Origin: Lytechinus pictus
Taxonomy: Eukaryota
Length of the DNA stretch: 64,000 nucleotides
NCBI RefSeq assembly: GCF_037042905.1
Contig: NC_087251.1
Span: 17,050,001 to 17,114,000 of the forward strand
Direction: 5' to 3'
The stretch's first letter is position 1. Every line of letters starts with the position of its first letter. Below the pieces are notes generated by a model. The model was not told the origin of the DNA and did no database searches. It worked only from the letters and a program-made list of their open reading frames with translations. Both the position numbers and the translations under genes were made by a program. This document shows, piece after piece, positions 10,208 to 53,747 of this stretch.

Positions 10208-10702
10208 ATCATGAAACTGCCCGAATCTTCCTTGTAACAACAAACAACCTTATTTACATGATGTGGACAGCTTATTTTCACATGGGTGAAGTCTTATTCA
10301 CGATCATCATTGAGGCAGGGGGGAAGTTAATCCCCCAAGAATGTGTTTTAATGAAACATAAAGTGAGTAAAGTGAGTGCATTCAACATCTGCATTTGATT
10401 TTAATAATTTATCCTATACTATCGTTTATACTACACTTTTATTCAAAGTAATATATTGTTTAGTATCAATCTGAATCTGAATAGGTCTGTTTATTCAGAC
10501 TATTTTCACTCTGCGCGTCTCTATACCTATAAACTTAGTGACGCATGATTCCAAAACCCATTGTGCAATCCCAATATTTAAATAATCAAAATCATCCAGC
10601 AGAGAAAGATTTGTAAATACAACTTTGAACTCACTTCAAGCCACTATACTAATAGCTCTGGTGAACACTACATGTATATTCCTCCAATGTTTAGTCGTTT
10701 GA

Positions 10703-13835
<3,133 letters not shown>

Positions 13836-19174: not shown

Positions 19175-22100
19175 TTAAATACTTAAAATGTAGGACGCGA
19201 GAACAATGAGACACGTGAAGGCAAGACCGTATGACGTCACAGGATGGGCATTGTTCCCGTCGTCGCTACTTTTGACGAAGCCATTGTTCTTGATGATTTC
19301 CGATATGACGCTAACAGATACTTTTGGTATTCGGGTTCGCTCGGGGACGGTGAAGTCGACAAAATGGAGACCAAATCGTTCGTTGTATCCAGCTGCCCAT
19401 TCGAAATTATCCATTAATGACCATGCGGTGTACCCTTTGACATTTGAACCATCCAGAACAATAGCTGAATGTAGGAATGAAACGAAAATTTATGAGTTGT
19501 TTGGAGACAGTTTTAGGAAATTAGGAAAAAAAATAAACTAAAAATATAAAGGGGGCGTGTGTGAGAAAGGGAGAAGAAGAGAAAGAGATAGAGGAGAAAA
19601 GGAGATATATCAGGGAATATAAAAATAGAGAGTAGTAGCGAAAGTTATAAACAACAACACAAACAAATAGTGCATTATAAACTTCATGATAGACCTAAGT
19701 CTAAATTTGAATTGTTGCATGGTAAGCGCCTACAGTATAGGCCCGTGCGATGATTTCAAGAGCACGACTTAATTTCTGGTGAAACTGTCAAAATGAGTAT
19801 TGTCAACTATCTTCTCATGCAGATCTGCTTTTATCAAATGAAATTTTTTCAATTATTCAATAGTTTTTGTCAGTTACTAGTGAAAATAATGAACCTCTGG
19901 ATTTCCTTTACGGAAACTATAAATTATCCATATCACTAACAAGATCTGTCATAGCGCAAAAAATATCTGAATATATGTGGATTTTATGTATGTCCAATAG
20001 CATTCCATACTATCAGTTTTTGTAATGTATGACAACCATCCACCTCTATAACATGTATAATGACAACCGAGTGGCTTTTATTTATTCATTAAATTTGATC
20101 TTTTTTTTCCCCATATTTTTAACATATATTGTTTATTCAATCTATATTTTATGTCCATATCATTTGTGAATTTCAATAATTTGATTGTTACATTTTACCA
20201 GCACTGTGTAAAATATACAATTCAGTCATAGTTTCGTACGATTACCCCATGATCCTTACCTTTTAAAACCTCATTGATGTATGCTCGGTAATATTTCTGT
20301 CTAATGACGTCGTTAATCTCATACTTGTCTCCTGTCGAGACGCCATTCTCTGTGACGTAGATAGGTACATTATATTCATCATCAATCCACTTAATGAGCC
20401 TGCGGATACCCCATGGAACTATCCTCAACCAGCTAGACCCAGAGCCAGGCCAGAAACCTTCTTGCCAAGTAATGATGTCAGAATCTTTCCAGTAGCTGGG
20501 AGGGTTAGATAGGTCTTCTACGTTAGCCACTACTTGGTTGGTCGTGTAGGTATTGATGCCAAAGAAGTCACCAGTGCCTTTGATGTAGTCAATCTCCTCT
20601 TGAGTGAATGCAGGTAATCGGGATTCATTCAATCCCTGGGCAGCGCTCTTCTTGGCGATCTTGGTCTTCATAATCTCAGGGTAGTCACCTTTGAAGATTG
20701 GATGGGCAAACCAACCAAGGTTGAACTGAAGAGCTCGATCGGATGCATCAAGACTGGTCTGGTTATTCCTGTCCCATGGCTCTGACCAATCAGAGTTCAA
20801 CGTGATACCTACTTGTCCATTCTGCAAAGTAAAGAACATGATAGAGCGATGGTGTGTGTGTTTAGTTTCAATTAATGATCATACTTGTCACTGGACCCCA
20901 AATTATTTTTACTTTAGCTCCTTAGCTGTAAAAACTGCACATAGCCTATACTGAATACAAATTAAGAAATCTAACACACGTATAGCCTGATCTTTTGCAG
21001 CATAACACAGTAAATTAGAAACGGATTAGTGGTTGTAATTATTAATAACTTCTTTCAAGGAAAGAACGAATCTCAATAGTAAGCAACCAGTGGGCAGACA
21101 ACTATTGGTCCTTATGCCACTTGGTAAGGATGGTGAATTGATTGGGCATGAGTTCGCGCACTTTCGTCTTTACGAACCCGGGCCGACGGGAAAGGGGAAA
21201 TTTCAATCTGCCTATAAAATGTGGGGGGGGGGGGAAATGTCCCTAAGTTTAACCATATAATTGGATGAAAGTGTAAGAATTTATGTGCTTCCTTGTTTGA
21301 CAAAATAATGATGAAGTTCTTTATTTACTACCTGTTAATATGTAAATACCTGGAAAGGTTTGTAGATGTCGTTGTAGGCATGGTAAGCTGCAGCATGGGA
21401 CTTGATGATGTTATGAGTGACTCTGTACGGAGTGTATGCGATCTCTGAAAGTCCTGGGGCAAATGCTCCTGTACCATACCCAAACAGAGACACAATCCAA
21501 GGTTCATTGAATGTGATCCACAGAGGGACTCGATCCCCGAATCTTTGAAAGCAGAGCTCGGCATAGTTCTTGAAGTGTTGCACGATGCCAGGGTTGTCCC
21601 AACCACCGACGTCTTGCAGAGCTTGCGGAAGGTCCCAGTGGTAGAGGGTGATCATTGGCTTGATACCATTCATAGCCAACTCGTCGATCAGGTTCTGATA
21701 ATAGTTTATACCTGCCTCATTGATGTTGTTGATGGTGCCTTGAGGAAGGATTCGAGACCAAGCAATTGAAAACCGGTAATATTTCAAACCCATGGCAGCC
21801 ATTAAAGCAACATCTTCCTTGTAGCTGGAGTGAAGAAAAAAAAGTAGGACCAATACTGGCATGATCTTATTTGGAAAAAAAAAAACCGTATTAACCTGGG
21901 TGCTATCTTTGAAAAAAATATGATAGATTTAAATTGAACTTAAATTAAGGTTTATTTCAGGTCATATTTAGTAAGTAGACAATTTAAGATCAATCTCAGT
22001 TTAAGTTTGTTTTTAATATATCGCAACTGCTAAGACTGGTCTTCTGTATTCCTCTCTTTTTTATTCTAAAACGCGTTTTATTATATGACATGTATGAGTT

Positions 22101-28276: not shown

Positions 28277-28420
28277 CCAGGTGTAGTGATTTGTTTGTCT
28301 TTGATAGAGCCAGTTTTGGATATGATCTCTGCGACTTCACAGGCTGATCGTTTGGCTTATCGGGGTCGGGCAGGATCTGGGAAGTTAACGTACGTAGTGG
28401 AGTCCGAAACGTTGTAACCC
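28277..28420 (-). pseudogene. Decayed copy of GH1 exon 4 (3' half), closest to GH1-3
   Basis: Minus strand reads GGTTAC-AACGTTTCGGACTCCACTACGTACGTTAACTTCCCAGATCCTGCCCGACCCCGATAAGCCAAACGA..GCAGAGATCATATCCAA and aligns to 34140-34000. It carries a 4-nt deletion, a 4-nt duplication and a GAA>TAA stop. Confidence 0.85.
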
Positions 28421-29893: not shown

Positions 29894-30426
29894 TATATTC
29901 TGAACGCTCATGTGCTTATCGATTTGGTTGTAATTTTCTCACCCCTCCCCCCCCCCCCGTCTTTCTCTCTCTCAACCACTCTCTTATTCCACTATCTCTT
30001 TCTCATTATTAGAATGAATAAAATGACTTCAAATTGGTTATTTACTTTTTTATTCAAAAAAATGTATCAATCCTACCTTTCATTATTCTACAAGATGAAA
30101 TTTTAACTACACTGTTCCGTTGCTTTTTTAATTGTGGGTAATCATAAAGTATTATTCATCATTTTCATAAAGATAATTGATGATGAAAAATATGTATTCG
30201 TGTTTTGGCTTTTTTTAACCAGATGTTGTAACAAACAAAAAAATCAACGGCATACGAGTTGGATGGTTATAGAACGAATATATATTTGTTGTATTTTCAG
30301 AATTTACAAACTCGCTAGTCATCCATGTGCCCAGTTGTTGTTTTAACATAATATGTATGAAAAAAAATTATGTTATTAAATTCTAAATTTGAGGATTGTT
30401 CTGATGATCGGTATGGAATGATGTCG

Positions 30427-33400
30427 TCATTCTTGGTCATCAGACAAGAGATGTGCAGACTCTTCTTTGAGGCATTCACGTCGTGAAGGTGCTGCTGTCA
30501 TTTTATTCAATTTTCGCATTACCATGAACATCATGGCAACCAATGCCATGACAACCATTGCCATGGCAGCCGAAGCGATTATCCAGGGGTTGAAAGTGGT
30601 CTGAGATGGTGCAAGACCAGGTGTATCTGTTTGAAATGGTAGAGAGGGAAAATATTGTTGACAACACAGATAATGAATACAAAATTTACAATTGAAATTA
30701 TCGTACGAGTAATCTGTACTAAAAAAGTATTATATTGTGCAAATTACTGAGTCGAGGTTAACTTGTAACAAATTCGAACAAGCATTTTTCAAATATGACT
30801 TTCCACAAGACCGTCTCGACTTTGACAATCATTTGTTTTGATGACATCAAACACGTTCGTGACTTAACAGCCTTTGCCAGATAAAAGTCCGACAAGTCAT
30901 TTCGTAAATCGTTTCCCTGATCTAGCTACACATGCAAATGTTACCGTTTTCATTGAACTGCAGACGTGAGATTGTTTTCTTCTCCGGAGCCGCACGAACG
31001 AGACGAATCGGCCCACGGGTAAAGCGTTTTGTATTTTGTTCGTTGATATTAACATCACGTCGTCTGCGACTTGCTGCATCGCTTTCACAGCTGTCATCGT
31101 TACAGACAGAATTTGTGTTCTCCGAATCACAGACCAACAGGTTGCAATGAATGTAAACCTGGACAGTTAAATATAAAGTAAAAGATCGATTACAGGTGTT
31201 AAAGAATAAGAATCTCCAACATCAATACAAGGCCATACAAACTCCCGAGAGAAGTAAATATTTTTAAAATGAAATTGTCGACCGTTGTCCTATTTTGATT
31301 AATGTCTCTTTTCGGGCTTGGCAAAGGTCTCCCCAATCTTAACTCATTGGTAGACTGTCTTTATCGATGAACCATTTTTTTTACAATGTGAACCCCTAAA
31401 AAAATGTACAGACTTGCAGTAGACGGTCAGACGCGGAAAAGTTGTTATTTGATGTCACACCAAAAAAATCAATGTAGCAAATACACATGTTCTACATTTT
31501 AAATAAAGAAAGAATTCGAGTCACAGACCCTACTATTATTATCAAGTTTTTAAAGTTGGTAGTATTGGTACGATGAAATCCATGTAGAAAGATAACATTG
31601 ATCATTGCATACTACTGTCATACTATTAAATTGTTGAGAGTTTAATTATAGTGCATGGACATCGTCCTGTCAAGGTATTGATGCGTGTTTGCATAACAAA
31701 AATCAATCGATAGCTTGGATTGACTGATTCCATGCGACTTACAAAATCTCCTTGATCGATGAACCGGAAAGTATTCATTTCGACCCCGACCCGATGTCCA
31801 CCATCTAGTCTTGTGATGTTGGTATCGATTCCATCCGCTGAACAACTGAAAGGGGGCAAAAGATTAAGAAATTTAATTTTTCGATAACATAAAATAACCA
31901 CTATAAAATAAGATATTTTTAGATGTTCTCTCTATGTATGAATTATTGGAAATGTTAATCCTACCGTTACACACAGGACAAGAATTACTTCAGTCACCTT
32001 GCTATGTATCGTTGTTTAGTTTCTTTAATGGAATTTGAACATTTTATAACTACGTTTCTTTGATCTCGTAAAAATCATTTAGTATAATAACATTGCGCGT
32101 CACATACCCGTCTACGATGAAATCATAACGAATGTCATCTTCGTATTGGGACATGGGTGTTGCCCGGCACGATCGAATGCTCAGATCAAGAGTTCCTTCG
32201 AGTGACGTCACTGATGCAGCGAAGTAGAGGTCCTCGTTGAGTCCAATCACCAGAGGATATCGTTCAACCACTTCATTGTAAGAATCATCGGTGTAGAGTT
32301 CGAAAGAGAAAGAATATTCTCCTTTCTCCTCGAGAGTCTTGTCGATGGTGTAGTCGCTCAACTGGTAGCGTACGGATTCCACGCGTTTGCTTCGGTTGTA
32401 CGAACACGTCAACGGTATATCGACGGCATACAGACGGCTGATGATCCCGTCTTCGTAACGGCTGACCACTTGATTCGTGTAAGTTTCTTCGGATGCAGAT
32501 TCCTGGAATAAAAAAAGTTACCAAGAAATGTTGGTTATTGTCTACATATAGAAATTAGATAGAAACAGAGGAAGACACAATATTTTTGACGTGCATATTA
32601 TCTAATGATTACTTGATTTCACTCCTGGACACGGTGTTTTAGGTTTTGATGGCATATCTCTTTCTCCTTACCCTTCATGGCCAGATACCAAAGAATGTGC
32701 CCCACACTGCATGATAATCTGATTATTTTAAATAGTTCCCGCAAAATGTAATGACCAACATAACTTCGATGATCGAACCGAATCAAACTAAATCAACCGG
32801 GTATTCTTCGGCATTGGTGGACCTGTCACGGCTCATACCATAAAGATCTTCAAAGCAATTAGAGGCTAATGGACGTGTATGTTCATAATTCCTTAAGCAA
32901 AAAAAAAGTAATTAAAAGAATGATCATTACCGATACTGATGTCCCACAACCTGTAAGGTTGGTAGTGAGTTCAATGATGTCCATGTTGAATTCATTGACT
33001 TCATCGATTCCCCAGCAGTCCTCATCGTCTTCAGACGCCAAAGCAAAACGAACATCGGTACCAACCATGCCACCAGTTAGGAGAGTCTTGGGAATCTCTA
33101 CGATCATCTGAGTGTCCGTACAGGTCAGGATGATTCCTTCGGTGTCAAGCTCTGAAACCGTCATGGTATGAACAGTTCATCAATAAGATTGAAATATCAA
33201 GATATCTTACACAGTAATAAGTAAATAAGCTATGGAAGTTTGCCCTTTAAAAGTACCATAGGTTGTATCACACACTCCCGTCCAACTATACCGTTTGCAC
33301 TAATCTAACATTTTCTCCACACTGTGTTTGCGGCAGGAACTCTCATGACCAAGCACGTATTGTATTTGAAGGGCAATATTTGAAATTCTTTACCATTTTT

Positions 33401-36400
33401 TAGCGAGTATCTTGAATAAAGTGGATTTATTGTATTGGTATATTCCCTGTTAGTCAGGGATAATTCGTTATGAGGCCTTCTATTGTTTTCGATTATGGCA
33501 ACTATTCCGATGACACTGTATCCTCATACAGCTCGTCGCAGTAGTAGGTGACGACGTCGCTGGTTTTCACCGCGCGATGGCGGTGGTTTACCTGGTGCAT
33601 TGATGCCATTCACTGGCGAGGAATTGATTATTCATCAAATTATTATATGTGTGTAATTCAATGTCTGTCGGGGCATATGTCATTCGGATTTCTACTCGAT
33701 GGTTTGTAGGGAGCAGGAACTGATCATGGAAGGCACTTACTTAGGACTGGGATGTTCTCGATAAATTTCAGGTTGTTTGGACACAGAATTACTAGTAAGT
33801 TCACGGTTTATGATAAGTACAAAACAGATTATTACATGCCCACTAAGTCAAAATATGACCATGCAATAACGTGAAGTAAAAGTTCCAAAATTTAGGTACA
33901 GAATTTTGAACCACATTCTACAAAGAATTAATATACGTCCTAGTCACCGATATTGAAAAAAATATCAAAAGCCAAGTCCAAGAAAATTACCATTGGCCGG
34001 TGTAGCGTCTTGTTCATCTTGAATAAAGCCATTGTTGGATATGATCTCTGCAAAAACACTAGATGATTGTTTGGCTTCTCGAGGTCGAGCTGGATCTGAG
34101 AAGTTTACGTAATGGAGTCCGAAACGTTCGCTGTAACCAGAAGCCCACTCGAAGTTATCCAGAAGTGACCACGCTGTATAGCCTTTGACGTCAACGCCGT
34201 CCATATTGATAGCTGGAATGGGAGAGGGAGATAGAGCGATGAAAAACTGTATAATGACGTGTTCAATATTCAAGAACAATATTTTCAGGGTGTTTGGGGT
34301 AGGCCCTGTATTATATTGAATTCTAAACGTAATATGCCTATAAGATATTGTTGTGTTTATTACCCTTTAGAAGTTCATTGATGTAAGCTGTGTAATAGTT
34401 TTGTCTGATTTCGTCATCAAGTTCGTAGATGTCAGATGTGGAAACGCCATTCTCCGTCACGTAGATGGGTACTCCATACTCTTCATAGATCCAGTTCACA
34501 AGATTGCGAAGGCCCCATGGAACAATCTTCAACCAGCTAGATCCAGAACCAGGCCAACTTTGATCCTGGTATGAACCCACATCTGAATCGGTCCAGTAGC
34601 TGGGAGGGTTGGAAAGGTATTCTGGGACAGCGAATGCATAGTTAGAAGTATAATGATTCAAACCAAAGAAGTCACTGGTTCCTATAATCCTTTCTATCTC
34701 TTCTGCTGTGAATTCAGGCAGTCGAGATTCGTTGAATCCTTGGGCAGCGCTCTTCTTGGCGATTTTGGTCTTCATGATCTCAGGGTAGTCACCTTTGAAG
34801 ACTGGATGAGCAAACCAACCGAGGTTGAACTGAAGGGCTCTATCAGATGCATCCAGACTGGTCTGGTTCGTCCTGTCCAGTGGTTCTGACCAATCAGAGT
34901 TCAACGTAATTCCAATTTCTCCTCCCTGTAAGAAAATATCATATTATACCGTTCAAGCAGTCGTCGTGGAATGTTTCCTTTTCAAGCGACTTGTCAAAAG
35001 TATGTTATGTTTGAAACCTCAACAAAACATCATCATATCATACCTTTTTCTGAAACAGAATAAAACAAAATGTCATCTTCATTAAAGTAAATAAAACTTA
35101 ATGATCAGAGAAAATAAAACTGGGACGGGAAAGAAATCCGATTTGTATTATACATGCAATATTGTGGTCATTGCCAAATCAAAATAACGTGAAAGTTCCG
35201 CCTGTCTTAACGAAATAATTGTGCAAATACCTGACTAAGTCTGTAGGTGTCGTTGTATACGTGGTATGCTTCGGCATGGGATTTAAGGAGATTGTGTGTG
35301 ACTCTGTATGGAGCTGTTCCAATATCTGAGATTCCTGGAGCAAACTGTCCGGTGCCATACCCAAAGAGAGACACGATCCAAGGTTCATTGAATGTGATCC
35401 ACAGAGGGACTCGATCCCCGAACCTTTGAAAGCAGAGCTCGGCATAGTCCTTGAAATGTTGTACGATGTCTGGGGTATCCCATCCACCAATGTCCTGCAG
35501 AGCTTGAGGGAGATCCCAGTGGTAGAGGGTGACCATAGCCTTGATACCATTCGCAGCCATCTCATCGATTAGGTTATTGTAGAAAGCGATACCAGGCTCG
35601 TTGATGTTGTTGATGGTTCCATCAGGAAGGATGCGCGCCCAGGAGATGGAGAAGCGATAGTATTCTAAACCCATGGCCTTCATCAGAGCAACATCTTCTT
35701 TATAGCTGCAATGTCGGGCAAAGAGAGAGGTTGGTCACTTATGGAAAAGGAGCTATACCATAATTAGGTTTCACTCAACTATAGATATACACAGTAAAGC
35801 ACGACCAGAATAAATGTGGTTCAGATTTATAAAGAAAAGGGGCGACAGTTTATTAAGGGAATAAGATATTTGTTTATTGATTTTTTTTTAATTATTATTT
35901 TCAAAATGTTGGTTTTTGTGCTATCTAGATTTTTTTAATCAGTCGGAACCTATTTAATACTTCCCATTGGAATTAAATGTATCAGAAAAAAGGTGGGAAT
36001 AGAGTACATGAATGGGCTATTTTTGACAAACCGTTTTAGGGGTCATTTTGAAAATCTTTTAGTGAGTACGTGTGTGAGAGCGGGTGTGTGAGGGTGTGCG
36101 AGGGTGGTTTTGTGTGTGTGTGTGAAACAAAATAAGTATATAGGCATTTAAAGCTGTTTTCCCTCTCAATTTACAGGACTGTATAGAACTATGTATTGAC
36201 CCGAATTTAGAATCATCTTTTATCTTAGAGAAAAAAATAGTGCTTATTTTGATATTTTGCCAGTACAACTGATCATTAGGGGGCGTTCTAAAAAGTTATC
36301 TGAAGTCATCATTGATTTTCTAAAGAACACTTTACCATCATGATCAAACAAATATAAAAGTTGTTGAATAGTGGACAATGGTGGATCGAACTTGCAAAGT

Positions 36401-38990
36401 TCTTGTTTCCTTTTTAATGATTAGCATGGGCCTTTTTTTTTTAACAAATGATGATGAATAGTTGTATAATTAAGCGGTTACCTAAGAAAAGAAAAGTAAT
36501 GTAAACTTATTTACATGCACTCTGCCGGCGCAAAAATATACACTGCCTTAAGTTCTAACTAAATGTTGTATGTTAGCATTCATCATTTTAACAATGAAAA
36601 AATGGACATTATGAAAATTACTGAACAGTTTCAAGATCTAACAAAACACGATTTATCAAATATTCGTAGCTCTCTCATCTCGCTTCCCATGTATGTCATA
36701 CCTTAATCTTGATAATGATCAACTCGTATGCTTCTTAAAATATTTGTTTTTATCCAGCGTAATTTCAACAATGTTTCAACATAAATTTTCCACTTCCCCG
36801 TTCACGTGCAACTGACTATAAGATTATCTTTGATTTCTGTTAAGTTCTGGAAATGTAAGAAATTCGTTTATCGATGTTCGCCCCCATTTAAAGTGTTTAT
36901 TCGCAAACAGATCAATGGGCGACACAGCGGATACAAATATTTACTTATTCCTCGTTTGTTACCGAACTTAACATGTAATTAATCATTGGTTAGCTGCGTT
37001 AACCATTAGTTGACAAAATAATGAAATAGTCGGACCTGGCAATAAAACATAAAGTAAAAACTACTGTTTAGTAAGGCAAACACAGCAGCACCAAATATCT
37101 AAAAACTTGTAGAGTTTTTTTTTAGTTCTTAGCGACGACGCTGTTTGCGTTGAGGGGAGTAAAACCAGTGACATGAATTTGCTTCAAGCAGTACGACTTA
37201 AAGATGAAATTTTCAAAATTTCGGGGCCAAAAAAAATTCAAGCGTTATTACGCTAAAGATGGTATAACGTACAAAAAATTAAGCGCTCTACTACCCATCT
37301 TCTTGTTTTACAACGTTTTAGTTCTATTGCATGACAGTTTTATCCATCGATCTTTGTTGTTTTATAGTTAGCTTTGATGGTACACGCAGATAAAGAACGA
37401 GTAAGCGAAGTTGCTCCAAAGCGTCTTTTTGAAGGGACAATCAGAGCTTCAAAATGTCTCTGAATAATGCTTCATGTATAGTATTAATTGCGTTTTGAGC
37501 AAGCCTTTTTATGAACAGTCGATTCAAATTAGGGATATGAATTCGAAGGAAAGGAAAATGATCACTTATCAAAAAGAGAACTGACACTTCAACAAAGAAA
37601 AGTAGCACATGTATTATGTATGTATCGTTTATCAGACGCTAACCTAAAACATCCGAAATCAGTCGAATGAATTCTATCACAGATAAAAAGCGAGACGAAA
37701 CTGGGAGGGTGTGAGTACTTTAACAATGAAGGTGGGATCTTTTCACCAAGAATAAAGGTGCCATTATACATTTATCAGATACTATTATGTCATTCTGCAA
37801 TTAATGGAAAGATGTTTTTAATCAAAGTCAAATTAAAAAGGGCAAGATTAATGGGGCTGGTGCCATGAAATAAGACACCCTTAAAAGCGGATAAGTATTT
37901 GTCTGTACCAAAAATGGTATTGCAAGCGTGAAAAGGACACTAGATGGAATTGAAAAGAGAGGTTTCGAATAATTCTTGAATGATATAAAGATCTGATACA
38001 ACCTTTAGAATTCTAGAAATAAAAAAAAAACAATTATAGAACTAGAAATTAATCGTCTTTTAGATATTTTAGAGTGTTATGGTAAAAAACTTATAGTCCT
38101 GTATAAAATGAAGAAAATCCTTTAAAAATATGGGAGGTACTATTTGGGAGTACTATCCTTAGTATTTTAGCGGAAAATCTTATTTTATCTACAAAATGAA
38201 TAACTAATACTTTTTCCTTGAAACAAAGACCATCACTTCTCCCCAAATATAAGATAGGAACAAGGGGAAAAAAAACTATTTCAGATGAGTGAAGACTTTT
38301 CATGCTGTCGTATTTTGTCATTCATAACCGAATCAGATGAACGTTTTTAAGAAATTCTGTCTGGTGACTATTCACTCTTCGATTTGGACTTGAAATTTTT
38401 ACACTTGTTCATTGTTTTTTACATCCTTTGTTTTTATTTTGTTTAATATATTCAATAATCAGAAACAAAGGGTGTTTAAGCAGTTTAAAATCATATGATA
38501 GCCAACACACTCTATCCTTTTTTCTTCATGGATAAATCAATATCACTTCCCCGTTATACGCTTGTGAAACGTTGGTGAAATTCACTGCATTATAACAGCG
38601 TTATCTCGAATCTAAATAAATCATGACATTTAGATAAGTCTCGAAAGACTTTAAATGATAATTCCAGTCGTTAACAGGTTTAAGAACTTACTTATGATAG
38701 CTGTCACATGCTACATCTCCTGTATCGTTGTTGTAGACGTTTCCTCCTTCATGAGTGAATCTATCCCAGATATTTTCTCCTTTCCCTTCTGTATCCCAAG
38801 CTCCTTCGATCTGGTACGAGGATGTCGCTGAACTCCAGATGAAATCCTCGGGGAAGGTGCCGTAAAGGAAAGCATCTCGATCAGGGTCGTTCCAGTAATC
38901 AGGGTACACGAATTCAACCTCCTGCGAAGCAGCAGAATACAACAAACTCAGAAATAAGAACAAAAGTCCTTGTAAGAATTTGAAAGGCAT
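30427..38990 (-). CDS. GH1-3: signal peptide - GH1 beta-glucosidase - ZP module - furin site - TM - cytoplasmic tail fusion protein, ~896 aa
   Basis: Exons 38990-38692, 35705-35231, 34925-34364, 34212-33991, 33151-32931, 32502-32108, 31845-31743, 31158-30945, 30626-30427 (2691 nt, all GT-AG, phases 2,0,1,1,0,2,0,1). GH1 catalytic motifs are intact. The join at 33991/33151 is inferred; without it the GH1 part stops at 33965. Confidence 0.82.
30945..33151 (-). other. Zona pellucida (ZP-N plus ZP-C) module, exons 5-8 of GH1-3
   Basis: Cys pattern [34 protein letters not shown] (ZP-N) and [59 protein letters not shown] (ZP-C). Followed by the RRRR furin site and the GPIRLV external hydrophobic patch. 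Confidence 0.92.
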
Positions 38991-50109: not shown

Positions 50110-53100
50110 ATGGATCTGCTACGAATTTCGTTAGTGTTTTCTTGTCTATTGATTCCAGTGATTGGACTCGACGACGACCCAGAGTTCGTTTATCCTGATC
50201 GTTTCAACGACCCTGATCGAGATGCTTTCCTTTACGACACCTTCCCCGAAGGTTTCATTTGGAGTTCAGCGACGTCCTCGTACCAGATCGAAGGAGCTTG
50301 GGATACAGATGGGAAAGGAGAAAGTATTTGGGATAGATTCACTCATGTAGGAGGAAACGTCTACAACAACGATACAGGAGATATAGCCTGCGACAGCTAT
50401 CATAAGTAAGAAGATAAAAAAGTTTTGAAAGTGTTGAGAAAAAATATACCCAATATGGAAGAAAAAGGGACATGCATTATGTGAAGTAAAAAGTAAATGT
50501 AATGTGTGAATTTTCACCCAACATTGCCCGAAATTTACACAGCATCAGGGGATAATTTACGCAGCAAACATACATGAATGTTTACTCTTAAACAAATATT
50601 CTTTGAATCTTTTTAGATGTATCGGTCTACTTTTGATATCCCTTGACCACATTGTATACGCCAAATTTCGTTGTTGCGTAACACTCTCAGAAAAACAAGG
50701 ACAAAGTTCTCGTCACCATGGTGAACGCAAGCACATAGAAAAAATACGTCGACTCATCTACTCATCTTGTTTTTTAGGGTATGTGTATTGGTAATTTTTG
50801 GTGTCCCGGGATTTTTCATAATAATTTGCAATGTATGCTATCCCAAATAACCTCTTTCATGATTGTATAAGAGGGGGAAATCGGAGGGTGATGGAAGTCA
50901 TAACAGACAATAAAGAAATCGTGGGTGAGGTCGATACAATAAGGGACACTCAGGAAGACAGTACGGCAAATAAAGAGAGTACAATATTCATTGAGAAGTT
51001 TGGTTCAGTTCTCTTGAAATCAGGAAAAGCATAGAGTACGAAATAATAAATCAAAACACCTTTCGAACAGTAGGCTAGTTTGTTGATTCAGTACATTGAC
51101 ACATTACAAATCCTTGTAAAATATATAATAGGTACAAGGAGGATGTTGCTCTGATGAAAGCGATGGGTCTCAAGTATTATCGCTTCTCAATCTCTTGGCC
51201 TCGAGTTCTTCCTGATGGTACTCTCAACAGCGTCAATGAAGCTGGCATCGCTTACTACAACAACCTGATCGACGAGCTCCGAGAGAACGACATCACACCC
51301 ATGGTCACTCTCTACCACTGGGATCTACCGCAGGCATTGCAGGACGTCGGTGGCTGGGCCAACGATACCATCATCGATCACTTCAATGACTACGCAGAAC
51401 TATGCTATCAAAGATTTGGTAGCCGTGTTCCTTTCTGGATTACATTCAATGAGCCGTGGATAGTCACTCTCCTAGGTCATGCAATCGGGTACTTTGCCCC
51501 AGGAGTAACAGAAGATGGTACAACCATCTATGTGGTGGCTCATAACATCATCAGGTCACACGCAAGGGCGTGGCATACATACGATGATACCTACAGGCAA
51601 CTACAGGTGAGCCATCTTCTGAATTGTAGAATCTTGGAGATTTCGGATCAGCATGGTCCAGCAAAGGTTTCATGCAGCGGTTTCAAACGGTTTTAACAGT
51701 ATTAATTTTGTTTCTGTCTTGAAATTCTATTAAAATACTTTCGAAATCTTTAATGATCCTAAGAATGTTTTGATAATTTTCTTGAGCTCTCGTAATAATA
51801 TATTTGAGGTATACACTGAGACATGTAAATAACCAATACTCAAGATAATAGCGAACCTAGGTTTACAATAGGATAATTGCGTATTACAATAATTGATGTC
51901 AAGAGACACAAAATATTTGTACATTTATTTCGTCTACCTTTTAATTTTCCGGTTGCATTATAGAATGGTCAAGTCGGCATCACATTGAACTCGGATCATG
52001 TAGAACCTTATGATCCAACCAATCAAGATCATGTCGACGCTGCTGATCGATGTTTACAGTTTCACTTTGGTTGGTGGGCCAATCCAATCTTTAAGAACGG
52101 TGACTACCCAGATATCATGAAGACATCTATTGCGAGAAAGAGTGCTGCTCAAGGTTTCGCCACGTCCAGACTCCCTGAGTTCACCGAAGAAGAGAAGGAA
52201 TATAACAGAGGTGAGAATAATTGCCCTGGCTTGGGGTTTGTCGGGGGAGTATAAAGATCCAGTCATGGGCATAATTGTCGGGGCCGGGTCCAATATGATT
52301 TTGATGACGTCTACGATCTAAACTTTAATTGAATCAATAATCAATCATGCGTCACGTCATCTTCATCGTCCACTCCTAAATCTAAAATGACGTGCTCTTA
52401 TTTTCACGCCATCTCGTTGTACGATCTAAAGATTCCCCCACCATCTATGTTGAAATCTGTAGTCAACAGGGGCACTCGACTACGATGACATCCAAGATCA
52501 TTGGACTTGGATGGCATCCATTCTATACTTTCTAAAAGTGTAAAATGACATAATCCATTTTGCTCTGCTCTTGTCTAAGGTACGGCTGATTTCTTTGGTC
52601 TGAACCAGTACACAACCCTCTATGCGAACAACACACCTGAAGATGACACCAGCCCACCTGGTTACCTTAAGGATCGTAATGTTCTGACCTTCGTGGATGA
52701 TGACTGGGAGACTGCGGGATCATCATGGTTAAAGATTGTTCCATGGGGCATTCGAAACATTCTCAAATGGATCGATTCGCAGTATCAGGTGCCCATCTAC
52801 GTCACAGAAAATGGTGTATCCACGCATGATGTGTTTGAACTTGATGACGTCATCAGACAGAAGTACTACAGGGCATATATCAATGAGGTCCTTAAAGGTA
52901 TAACAAATACTTTTTTTAGGATTGCAGTGACTCACTCCTACAAAATAATTTTTCGTATTCACATTCTGTAAATCAACATATTCTAGATTCTTTCTGTGCT
53001 CCTTTCTTCCCGCCTGTCTGTTTTTCATTCATTATTTTCTTCCTTTTTCCCCCAGCTTTATTTTCTTTTATGTCGTCTTAATGTTTGATAGTGTCGAAAT

Positions 53101-53747
53101 TGATTGTAACAGAGCAATGACATATGCAGCCTCCAACAACGTCCTTTTGTACATCATTTTGACCCTGTCTTATATTCCAGTGGTGTAGGACGCATGCCTC
53201 ATAAATGGCAGATCGTGGTTCGATGGAAACATTGCCTTTGGTGATGGGGCTATATAAAACGATTCCTTGAGATTTCTATAGTCATTTTTAAGAGGGCGAG
53301 GCGAACCTCTCTCATAGGCTACTATTCGAAATTCTAGCCCCCCCCCCCCCAGATCACCACCCATGGTTAATCGTTTTCTTTTGGTAAACAATTGTTAATA
53401 TTCTTATCATCTTAATTATGTAATGTTTCATCCTAGCAATCAAATTGGATGGCGTTGATGTAAGAGGCTACACTGCATGGTCACTTTTAGACAACTTTGA
53501 ATGGGCCTCTGGGTACAGTGAAAGGTTTGGGATGCACTACGTCGACTTCGATGATCCAGAGCGACCTCGAACGCCAAAGAGATCTGTCTCTGTATACTCC
53601 AAGATCATCGCTGACAATGGGTTCATCAAAGAGGTACCTACGACCCCTCCAACAGAATACACAACTGCAAGTGCGCCATCTCTCAGCACGCTGAGTGTAA
53701 TCATGGGCCTCTGTTTCTGCGCTCTCGCAAACATCTTGACGAAATAA
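50110..53747 (+). CDS. GH1-5: LPH-like beta-glucosidase with signal peptide and GPI-like C-terminus, 548 aa
   Basis: Exons 50110-50405, 51132-51606, 51964-52210, 52580-52897, 53437-53747 (1647 nt). Signal peptide [19 protein letters not shown]; WITFNEP and YVTENG intact; ends with a Thr/Pro stalk, then [26 protein letters not shown]. Confidence 0.93.

Follow-up and report, generated by a model that had tools for sequence, protein, structure and literature searches.

Can a zona pellucida (ZP) module carry an enzyme? Animals use ZP modules as their general device for polymerisation outside the cell, and build with them egg coats, urine filaments, the tectorial membrane and the cuticle matrices of insects and worms. 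The domains that they carry are, as far as we know, binding or structural ones, and a catalytic partner is not known to us from any characterised ZP protein. The question is raised by a stretch of 64,000 nucleotides from the sea urchin Lytechinus pictus (NC_087251.1, positions 17,050,001 to 17,114,000), called the window here. On its minus strand an earlier note, made from the letters alone, had described a glycoside hydrolase family 1 (GH1) gene that runs on into a complete ZP polymerisation module. We find that the fused gene and its mRNA are real, and there is hardly any room for doubt in our minds on this point. For the statement as a whole, namely one real chimeric L. pictus gene whose GH1 enzyme would be displayed on a ZP filament, our confidence is moderate, and it is the reading that we favour.

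Structure of the fusion gene

The fusion gene could be rebuilt from nine exons, which extend from 38990 to 30427 on the minus strand (coordinates are positions in the window). Joined, these exons have 2691 nt, that is 896 codons and a stop codon, with zero internal stops and with GT-AG borders at all eight introns. The frame of 896 codons without stops or frameshifts, which the earlier note had proposed, was recovered in this way. The joint between the two halves lies between exons 4 and 5. Exon 4 ends with AATG|GTAATT at 33991 and exon 5 starts with TTTCAG|AG at 33151; both borders are in phase 1 and lie exactly where they had been placed before, and the intron between them measures 839 nt (33990-33152). 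The gene has the following features:

38692..38990, minus strand: exon 1, with the start codon, the signal peptide and the start of the GH1 barrel (YQIEG); PF00232 E 3e-24
38925-38990, minus strand: signal peptide, aa 1-22, a hydrophobic N-terminus encoded by GH1 exon 1
35231..35705, minus strand: exon 2, GH1 barrel with YHWDLP and the acid/base Glu207; PF00232 E 4.5e-66
35384-35386, minus strand: codon of Glu207 in TFNEP, exon 2
34364..34925, minus strand: exon 3, GH1 barrel with NHY and the nucleophile Glu416; PF00232 E 2.9e-39
34452-34454, minus strand: codon of Glu416 in TENG, exon 3
33991..34212, minus strand: exon 4, end of the GH1 barrel (NFEW) and acidic linker, with a phase-1 donor
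33152..33990, minus strand: intron 4, 839 nt, containing an unused read-through stop and a decayed ZP micro-exon
33965-33967, minus strand: the unused read-through stop, at which the unspliced exon-4 frame terminates 26 nt beyond the donor
32931..33151, minus strand: exon 5, first part of ZP-N (Cys530, 565, 588), phase-1 entry; PF23344 E 1.5e-5
32108..32502, minus strand: exon 6, end of ZP-N (Cys626), interdomain linker and first half of ZP-C (Cys705); PF00100 E 1.1e-14
31743..31845, minus strand: exon 7, middle of ZP-C (Cys726)
30945..31158, minus strand: exon 8, end of ZP-C (Cys764, 769, 778, 783), RRRR and external hydrophobic patch, phase-1 exit
31057-31068, minus strand: furin-type site RRRR, aa 790-793, exon 8
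30997-31014, minus strand: GPIRLV, aa 808-813, exon 8, within the external hydrophobic patch
30427..30626, minus strand: exon 9, stalk, membrane helix, cytoplasmic tail of 28 aa and stop codon
30514-30591, minus strand: membrane helix, about aa 843-868, with the strongest hydropathy peak at 845-868 and RK after it
30073..30426, minus strand: 3' untranslated region; contig depth persists to about 30073
30132 / 30054, minus strand: ATTAAA / AATAAA, from a motif scan near the 3' end of the fusion gene

The exon of the membrane helix also holds a 15-nt tandem repeat of 2.3 copies (30532-30565). It codes for AMA/MVV repeats and is probably inconsequential.

Transcripts across the joint

The joint from 33991 to 33151, for which the earlier note had wished RNA support, is carried exactly by contigs of two studies. 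Contigs of two L. pictus runs (X15 and X1, from separate studies) were aligned to positions 29900-35750 of the window. According to the run index, same-species runs contain 0.38-0.44 of the sampled words of the stretch, and the exonic share is about 45%. One contig per run, of 1534 nt and 1736 nt, has exons 3-4-5-6-7-8 spliced together with 0 mismatches. The 1736-nt contig continues through exon 9 to the stop codon, and in the other run a separate contig has the joint between exons 8 and 9. The fusion joint itself (33151|33991, skipping 839 nt, with CT..AC on the plus strand) is found in one contig each of X15 and X1, and the shorter side of the match measures 222 nt. The other joints in the contigs are 34212|34364, 32501|32930, 31845|32108, 31156|31741, 30626|30945 and 34924|35230; their ends are all CT..AC on the plus strand, which is GT..AG on the strand of the gene. 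At 35705 there is a loose contig end whose letters, when reverse-complemented, are the final 30 nt of exon 1, and this supports the splice 38692|35705. Taken together, RNA-derived contigs from two studies show all eight junctions of the model.

Inside intron 4 the contig depth is zero (bins 33232-33819, two runs), and at exon 5 the contigs of the two studies show no branching. Neither transcripts that stop at 33965 nor ZP exons with a promoter and signal exon of their own were seen among the contigs of the two runs. The contigs from exon 3 to exon 8 or 9, which include the joint 33991|33151, together with the empty intron 4 show that the fusion mRNA is real and is the dominant form in the samples of both studies. 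A genome search gave a single copy with 100% identity each for exon 6 and exon 3, and therefore a retrocopy does not account for the intron-less contigs. The expressing runs have been annotated as RNA by guess only, and their contig letters are far fewer than in the DNA runs of a relative. We take them as RNA because of the spliced contigs, the empty introns, a low-depth retention of intron 8, the few contig letters and the lack of a retrocopy. In RNA-like runs of a close relative (three studies) the share of words present is 0.09 for the ZP stretch and 0.14-0.16 for the whole stretch. The close relative expresses near-identical copies of both halves, which is known from the separate word shares and not from a joint.

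Some minor variation is visible in the same contigs. The retention of intron 8 is seen in X15, where a contig of low depth (3 versus 159) is unspliced over this intron (30598-30974); it probably represents pre-mRNA or a minor intron-retaining form, and such a form would terminate the frame ahead of the membrane helix. Both studies have a G>A change at 34743, which is synonymous (Ala319, GCC to GCT) and is a break point of the contigs, and both have variants in the 3' untranslated region at 30102, 30113 and 30133.

The GH1 half

The GH1 profile PF00232 is matched by exons 1-4 at profile positions 3-59, 67-216, 221-392 and 393-453 of 453, with E-values from 3e-24 to 5e-66. Both catalytic glutamates are intact, as the earlier note had seen. 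Glu207, the acid/base, lies in the NEP of ITFNEP, and Glu416, the nucleophile, lies in the ENG of YVTENG. The motifs YQIEG, YHWDLP, NHY and NFEW occur once each, at residues 59, 161, 348 and 465; in GH1 structures these are glycone-binding signatures. At the level of sequence the GH1 half has every feature by which a GH1 is recognised, and because the catalytic machinery is intact an activity of the beta-glucosidase, beta-galactosidase or beta-fucosidase type is to be expected.

The closest solved GH1 structure is PDB 8in1, a beta-glucosidase with two GH1 domains, followed by Klotho proteins and a cytosolic beta-glucosidase (query with exon 2). Exon 2 matches both domains of 8in1 (combined E 1.4e-106), with the NEP region in the second domain; 8in1 differs in having two GH1 domains, and the match shows no ZP module or membrane anchor. 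Lactase-phlorizin hydrolase and Klotho share with the fusion protein that extracellular GH1 barrels are held by a C-terminal membrane helix, but their GH1 repeats number two to four and a ZP module is absent. The fusion protein, in contrast, has a single barrel that is linked to the ZP module by an acidic linker of 17 residues, and the ZP module and the cleavage site are placed between the enzyme and the helix.

The ZP half

Pfam recognises ZP-N (PF23344) on exon 5 and ZP-C (PF00100) on exon 6. All landmarks of this half that had been described earlier could be located, namely four cysteines in ZP-N, six in ZP-C, RRRR, GPIRLV, the membrane helix and the short tail. The ZP-N cysteines 530, 565, 588 and 626 are aligned to the four ZP-N cysteines of uromodulin. 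The ZP-C cysteines 705, 726, 764, 769, 778 and 783 form a six-cysteine (type II) pattern, which was assigned via the profile of a family of stand-alone sea-urchin ZP proteins. Over ZP-N, linker and ZP-C this family profile matches uromodulin with E 4.5e-19 and GP2 with E 6e-18, and weaker matches are ZP3, ZP2 and betaglycan. Eight of the ten cysteines pair with uromodulin in the profile alignment; the last two (778 and 783) fall at its gap and are in column in the family alignment. At the column of RRRR, R-(R/K)-R-R is found in the four stand-alone homologues that were aligned and in the consensus of nine homologues, and TKRFTRGP(L/I)R is likewise common to these four and present in the nine-homologue consensus. 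The external hydrophobic patch is kept across the stand-alone family. Presumably it resembles the G-P-hydrophobic patch of uromodulin and ZP3, a likeness that serves as a lead only. Judged in this way, the ZP half has all the features of a polymerising ZP module that a sequence can have, and cleavage and filaments are predicted.

In the filaments of uromodulin and GP2 the ZP modules assemble once the propeptide dissociates, and the N-terminal regions stick out as branches (PMC7737619, PMC12212870). The entire ZP module of the fusion protein aligns with those of uromodulin and GP2, including the pattern of ten cysteines, and the order of a basic cleavage site, a hydrophobic patch and a membrane anchor is the same. 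The N-terminal cargo would likewise project from the filament core (PMC7737619, PMC12212870). GP2 acts in a digestive tract. There are also clear differences. In uromodulin and GP2 the branches consist of non-catalytic domains such as EGF and D8C, and a glycosylphosphatidylinositol (GPI) anchor holds the protein, whereas here a GH1 barrel would be the branch and a membrane helix with a conserved tail serves as the anchor. The fusion protein has low sequence identity to these two proteins, and its polymerisation is a proposal by analogy.

Origin of the fusion

Among database proteins exon 6 has its best relative in P0001, a ZP protein of 407 aa from L. pictus, which an exon on contig C5 of the same genome matches with 100% identity. 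Stand-alone ZP proteins of this family have about 400 aa and are found in L. pictus, L. variegatus, Strongylocentrotus, Heliocidaris and Diadema. The members named here are P0001 of L. pictus, P0144 of S. purpuratus, P0146 of Heliocidaris and P0150 and P0152 of Diadema, which are auto-annotated as CUZD1-like. Residues 519-896 of the fusion protein are collinear with the family from the first ZP-N residue to the last residue of the tail, with 58-61% identity, and the membrane helix and the tail are also conserved in the stand-alone proteins. The gene on C5 has the same exon blocks, intron positions and phases as the ZP half of the fusion gene. The exon before ZP-N in this gene and exon 5 of the fusion gene share the codon position and the phase of entry (G|AA versus G|AG), and the part upstream of this in the parent gene consists of a signal exon and two micro-exons of 15 nt and phase 1-1 (GINAQ and VTEEP). 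By its sequence, the ZP half copies exons of an old stand-alone sea-urchin ZP family that is built of phase-1 exons.

The stand-alone genes begin with a signal exon of their own, followed by one or two micro-exons of 15 nt, and their proteins have no further domain, whereas in the fusion gene four GH1 exons take the place of the signal exon and the micro-exons. A separate signal-peptide exon for the ZP part is missing, as had been noticed before, and intron 4 holds only the decayed 15-nt micro-exon. With no signal exon in intron 4 and with GH1 exon 4 as the splice partner of exon 5, the ZP half counts, in terms of sequence, as a derivative of the family that lacks the family architecture, and not a member.

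A few observations concern the stand-alone family itself. The parent ZP gene has its locus at C5:31553000-31572999, and a cluster of ZP paralogues extends over C5:31.39-32.31 Mb. The second micro-exon, VTEEP, is present in some homologues and absent from others, which suggests gain, loss or skipping of micro-exons. The Diadema homologue in the alignment has neither the cysteine after FI..G nor the last ZP-C cysteine, while all others have both, as if one disulfide pair had been lost as a whole.

Two relics near the fusion joint and behind the gene bear on its origin:

33586-33606, minus strand: decayed GINAQ micro-exon with donor, in intron 4, in collinear order and with 17/21 bases matching the parent
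28280..28413, minus strand: broken partial copy of exon 4, 2 kb beyond the ZP stop, with an in-frame stop and a frameshift

The GINAQ relic is the sole such site in the window on both strands, and 0 of 2000 shuffled introns have one. Its acceptor AG is gone. An AG 6 bases upstream would give an in-frame exon of 21 nt (VNGINAP, 33586-33612), which is absent from the contigs, from which rare isoforms would drop out. Relics of a signal exon or of the second micro-exon were not found in intron 4. The exon-4 relic has 79% nucleotide identity to exon 4 over 134 bp, and none of the other GH1 last exons tested comes as close to it; its homology stops no more than 8 nt from the present donor. It is likely the footprint of the rearrangement that made the fusion. 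The frame behind this relic enters a hydrophobic stretch, which shares AFTCL with the tail of the GH1 at 19177 and may be the displaced ancestral anchor. A candidate relic of the membrane-helix exon at 27610-27551 (E 0.58) was dropped, since it had no support at the DNA level.

Three other GH1 genes have a hydrophobic tail that is GPI- or transmembrane-like within their last exon, two of them in the window and the third being the closest paralogue at C7:46.67 Mb. The genome search found no GH1 adjoining a ZP exon elsewhere in the genome. We propose that a rearrangement at the DNA level placed a ZP gene, from the first micro-exon onward and without its signal exon, behind GH1 exon 4. The ZP exons would have displaced the hydrophobic tail of a membrane-tethered GH1, and the compatibility of the phase-1 borders would have let the joined frame work.

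Age and constraint of the ZP half

In the comparison with the closest paralogue synonymous sites are saturated (pS 0.79) at a dN of 0.28, and hence no dN/dS ratio can be given for this pair. The fusion protein keeps 119 of the 140 columns (85%) that are invariant among nine stand-alone homologues, and at variable columns it agrees with the consensus in 53%. Most of the 21 changes at invariant columns are conservative. This retention argues that the ZP half is still under the structural constraints of the family. In a tree the ZP half stands beside the Diadema proteins and outside the camarodont group (99/99), a placement that may be due to long-branch attraction; the tree had been rebuilt after a version with distant outgroups came out unresolved. 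The saturated sites and the tree position point to an old donor lineage. The fusion event appears to be much younger than the split of the ZP paralogues, as the exon-4 relic has diverged by 21%.

Possible function of the fusion protein

As a type-I membrane protein whose enzyme faces outwards, the fusion protein would enter the secretory pathway and arrive at the apical surface. A proprotein convertase would cut at RRRR, and the hydrophobic patch would depart. The ZP modules would then join head to tail, alone or with stand-alone ZP paralogues, as in uromodulin and GP2, with the GH1 barrel standing out from the filament core as a 'branch'. The outcome would be an immobilised beta-glycosidase matrix, most plausibly on the digestive epithelium. 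A digestive or other apical epithelial role would be the most plausible setting because the sister GH1 genes are simply membrane-tethered. The earlier note had proposed an active glycosidase displayed on a ZP filament or an apical matrix. The fused gene, its mRNA and the complete ZP module have stood up from this proposal, and catalysis and filament formation are what we infer for the protein by analogy. That an active glycosidase is the cargo of a ZP filament of the uromodulin and GP2 type, formed after furin cleavage by the fusion protein alone or by co-assembly, and placed on an epithelium, is put forward tentatively and at somewhat less than even chances.

Several points weigh against an enzyme-bearing ZP filament encoded by a single gene. 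The contigs, built from 31-letter words, establish each junction by itself and do not prove that a single molecule extends over exons 1 to 9. In two deep raw-read RNA runs of L. pictus there are 0 reads at the locus, which is no test of the joint but suggests that expression is restricted to some samples. A GH1+ZP protein was not found in the annotated proteomes (queries were P0001, the ZP region of P0153 and the family alignment with the exon peptides of the window), although this search also missed the product of the window itself and would miss models that are longer than 1246 aa or unannotated, so that the absence weighs little either way. A barrel of 50 kDa just 17 residues away from ZP-N might hinder head-to-tail assembly. 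The predicted structure of the stand-alone paralogue P0001 (alignment of 14 rows) has a mean pLDDT of 47, which is too poor for a reading of the fold. Non-polymerising ZP modules exist, for example in betaglycan and endoglin. Finally, the ZP branch of the fusion protein is long, 0.59 versus a median of 0.11 (five times), and this could reflect a changed function.

The alternative that survives best is that the fusion protein is real and its ZP module is non-filamentous, serving as a stalk, an apical sorting signal and a device for regulated shedding. The enzyme would then be membrane-bound like brush-border lactase, and a soluble ectodomain would be freed by the cut at RRRR. Tethering can be seen as an ancestral need, since sister GH1 genes have simple hydrophobic anchors, yet it is just such an existing plain anchor that was swapped for about 380 residues. 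Betaglycan, which has a ZP module that does not polymerise, is among the PDB matches; the best structural relatives, however, are the polymerising uromodulin and GP2. The long ZP branch and the bulky cargo close to ZP-N would both suit a stalk, but the 85% of invariant positions, the ten cysteines, the cleavage site and the patch that have been kept go beyond the needs of one. We regard this alternative as unlikely, although it deserves to be taken seriously.

It is very improbable that the GH1 barrel is a glycan-binding, lectin-like head on a ZP protein, in the style of Klotho, and not an enzyme. ZP proteins usually carry binding domains, and the solved structures nearest to exon 2 include Klotho and beta-Klotho. 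The Klotho domains, however, each lack one catalytic glutamate, while the fusion protein keeps both together with all glycone-binding motifs, and the closest solved relative, 8in1, is the entry of an active two-domain beta-glucosidase.

We give almost no credence to a conjoined read-through transcript of neighbouring genes that yields little or no protein, the true products being a GH1 that ends at the 33965 stop and a separate ZP protein: animals often have read-through chimeras of tandem genes, the unspliced frame does meet a stop 26 nt beyond the donor, and the evidence from the expressing samples consists of contigs and not of raw reads, but intron 4 is without depth, the contigs of two studies are unbranched at exon 5, intron 4 has no ZP signal exon and its sole upstream relic has lost its acceptor, and the 896-codon frame is intact with a constrained ZP part.

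Novelty and implications

A search with exon 6 against a representative protein library returned only stand-alone or non-enzyme ZP proteins. In the full-text literature that was searched we found no description of a GH1+ZP protein and no relevant work on sea-urchin CUZD1 or lactase. The earlier note had not recognised the architecture as that of a described family, and within the reach of these searches for proteins and papers this is supported: the GH1+ZP architecture is unusual, and the combination was not found described. The fusion may be confined to one genus.

If the glycosidase does sit on a ZP filament, it would be the first ZP polymer with an enzyme branch, made by exon shuffling between phase-1 exons. 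The ZP module would then also be able to immobilise catalysis at an epithelial surface, and the protein would offer a natural model of protein filaments that are decorated with an enzyme. The fusion lets one ask if a large globular cargo beside ZP-N permits the head-to-tail assembly of ZP modules. The locus is also a clean example, verified by transcripts, of the way in which such an architecture comes about. Traces of its origin are still visible, namely the phase-1 exons of the donor gene, the phase-1 donor site that closes the last exon of the recipient, the relic of the micro-exon, the relic of the displaced exon and the anchors of the sister genes.

The tandem GH1 array

The window contains five tandem GH1 genes, the fusion gene (38990-30427) included. 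The four flanking genes are:

10679-13833, plus strand: flanking GH1, from the gene scan of the window
22645-19177, minus strand: flanking GH1, ending in a hydrophobic GPI- or transmembrane-like tail
43171-40333, minus strand: flanking GH1, from the gene scan of the window
50131-53745, plus strand: flanking GH1, ending in a hydrophobic GPI- or transmembrane-like tail

Two of these four genes stop shortly past the barrel. From the differing ends of the last exons it appears that secreted and tethered forms of GH1 lie side by side in the array.

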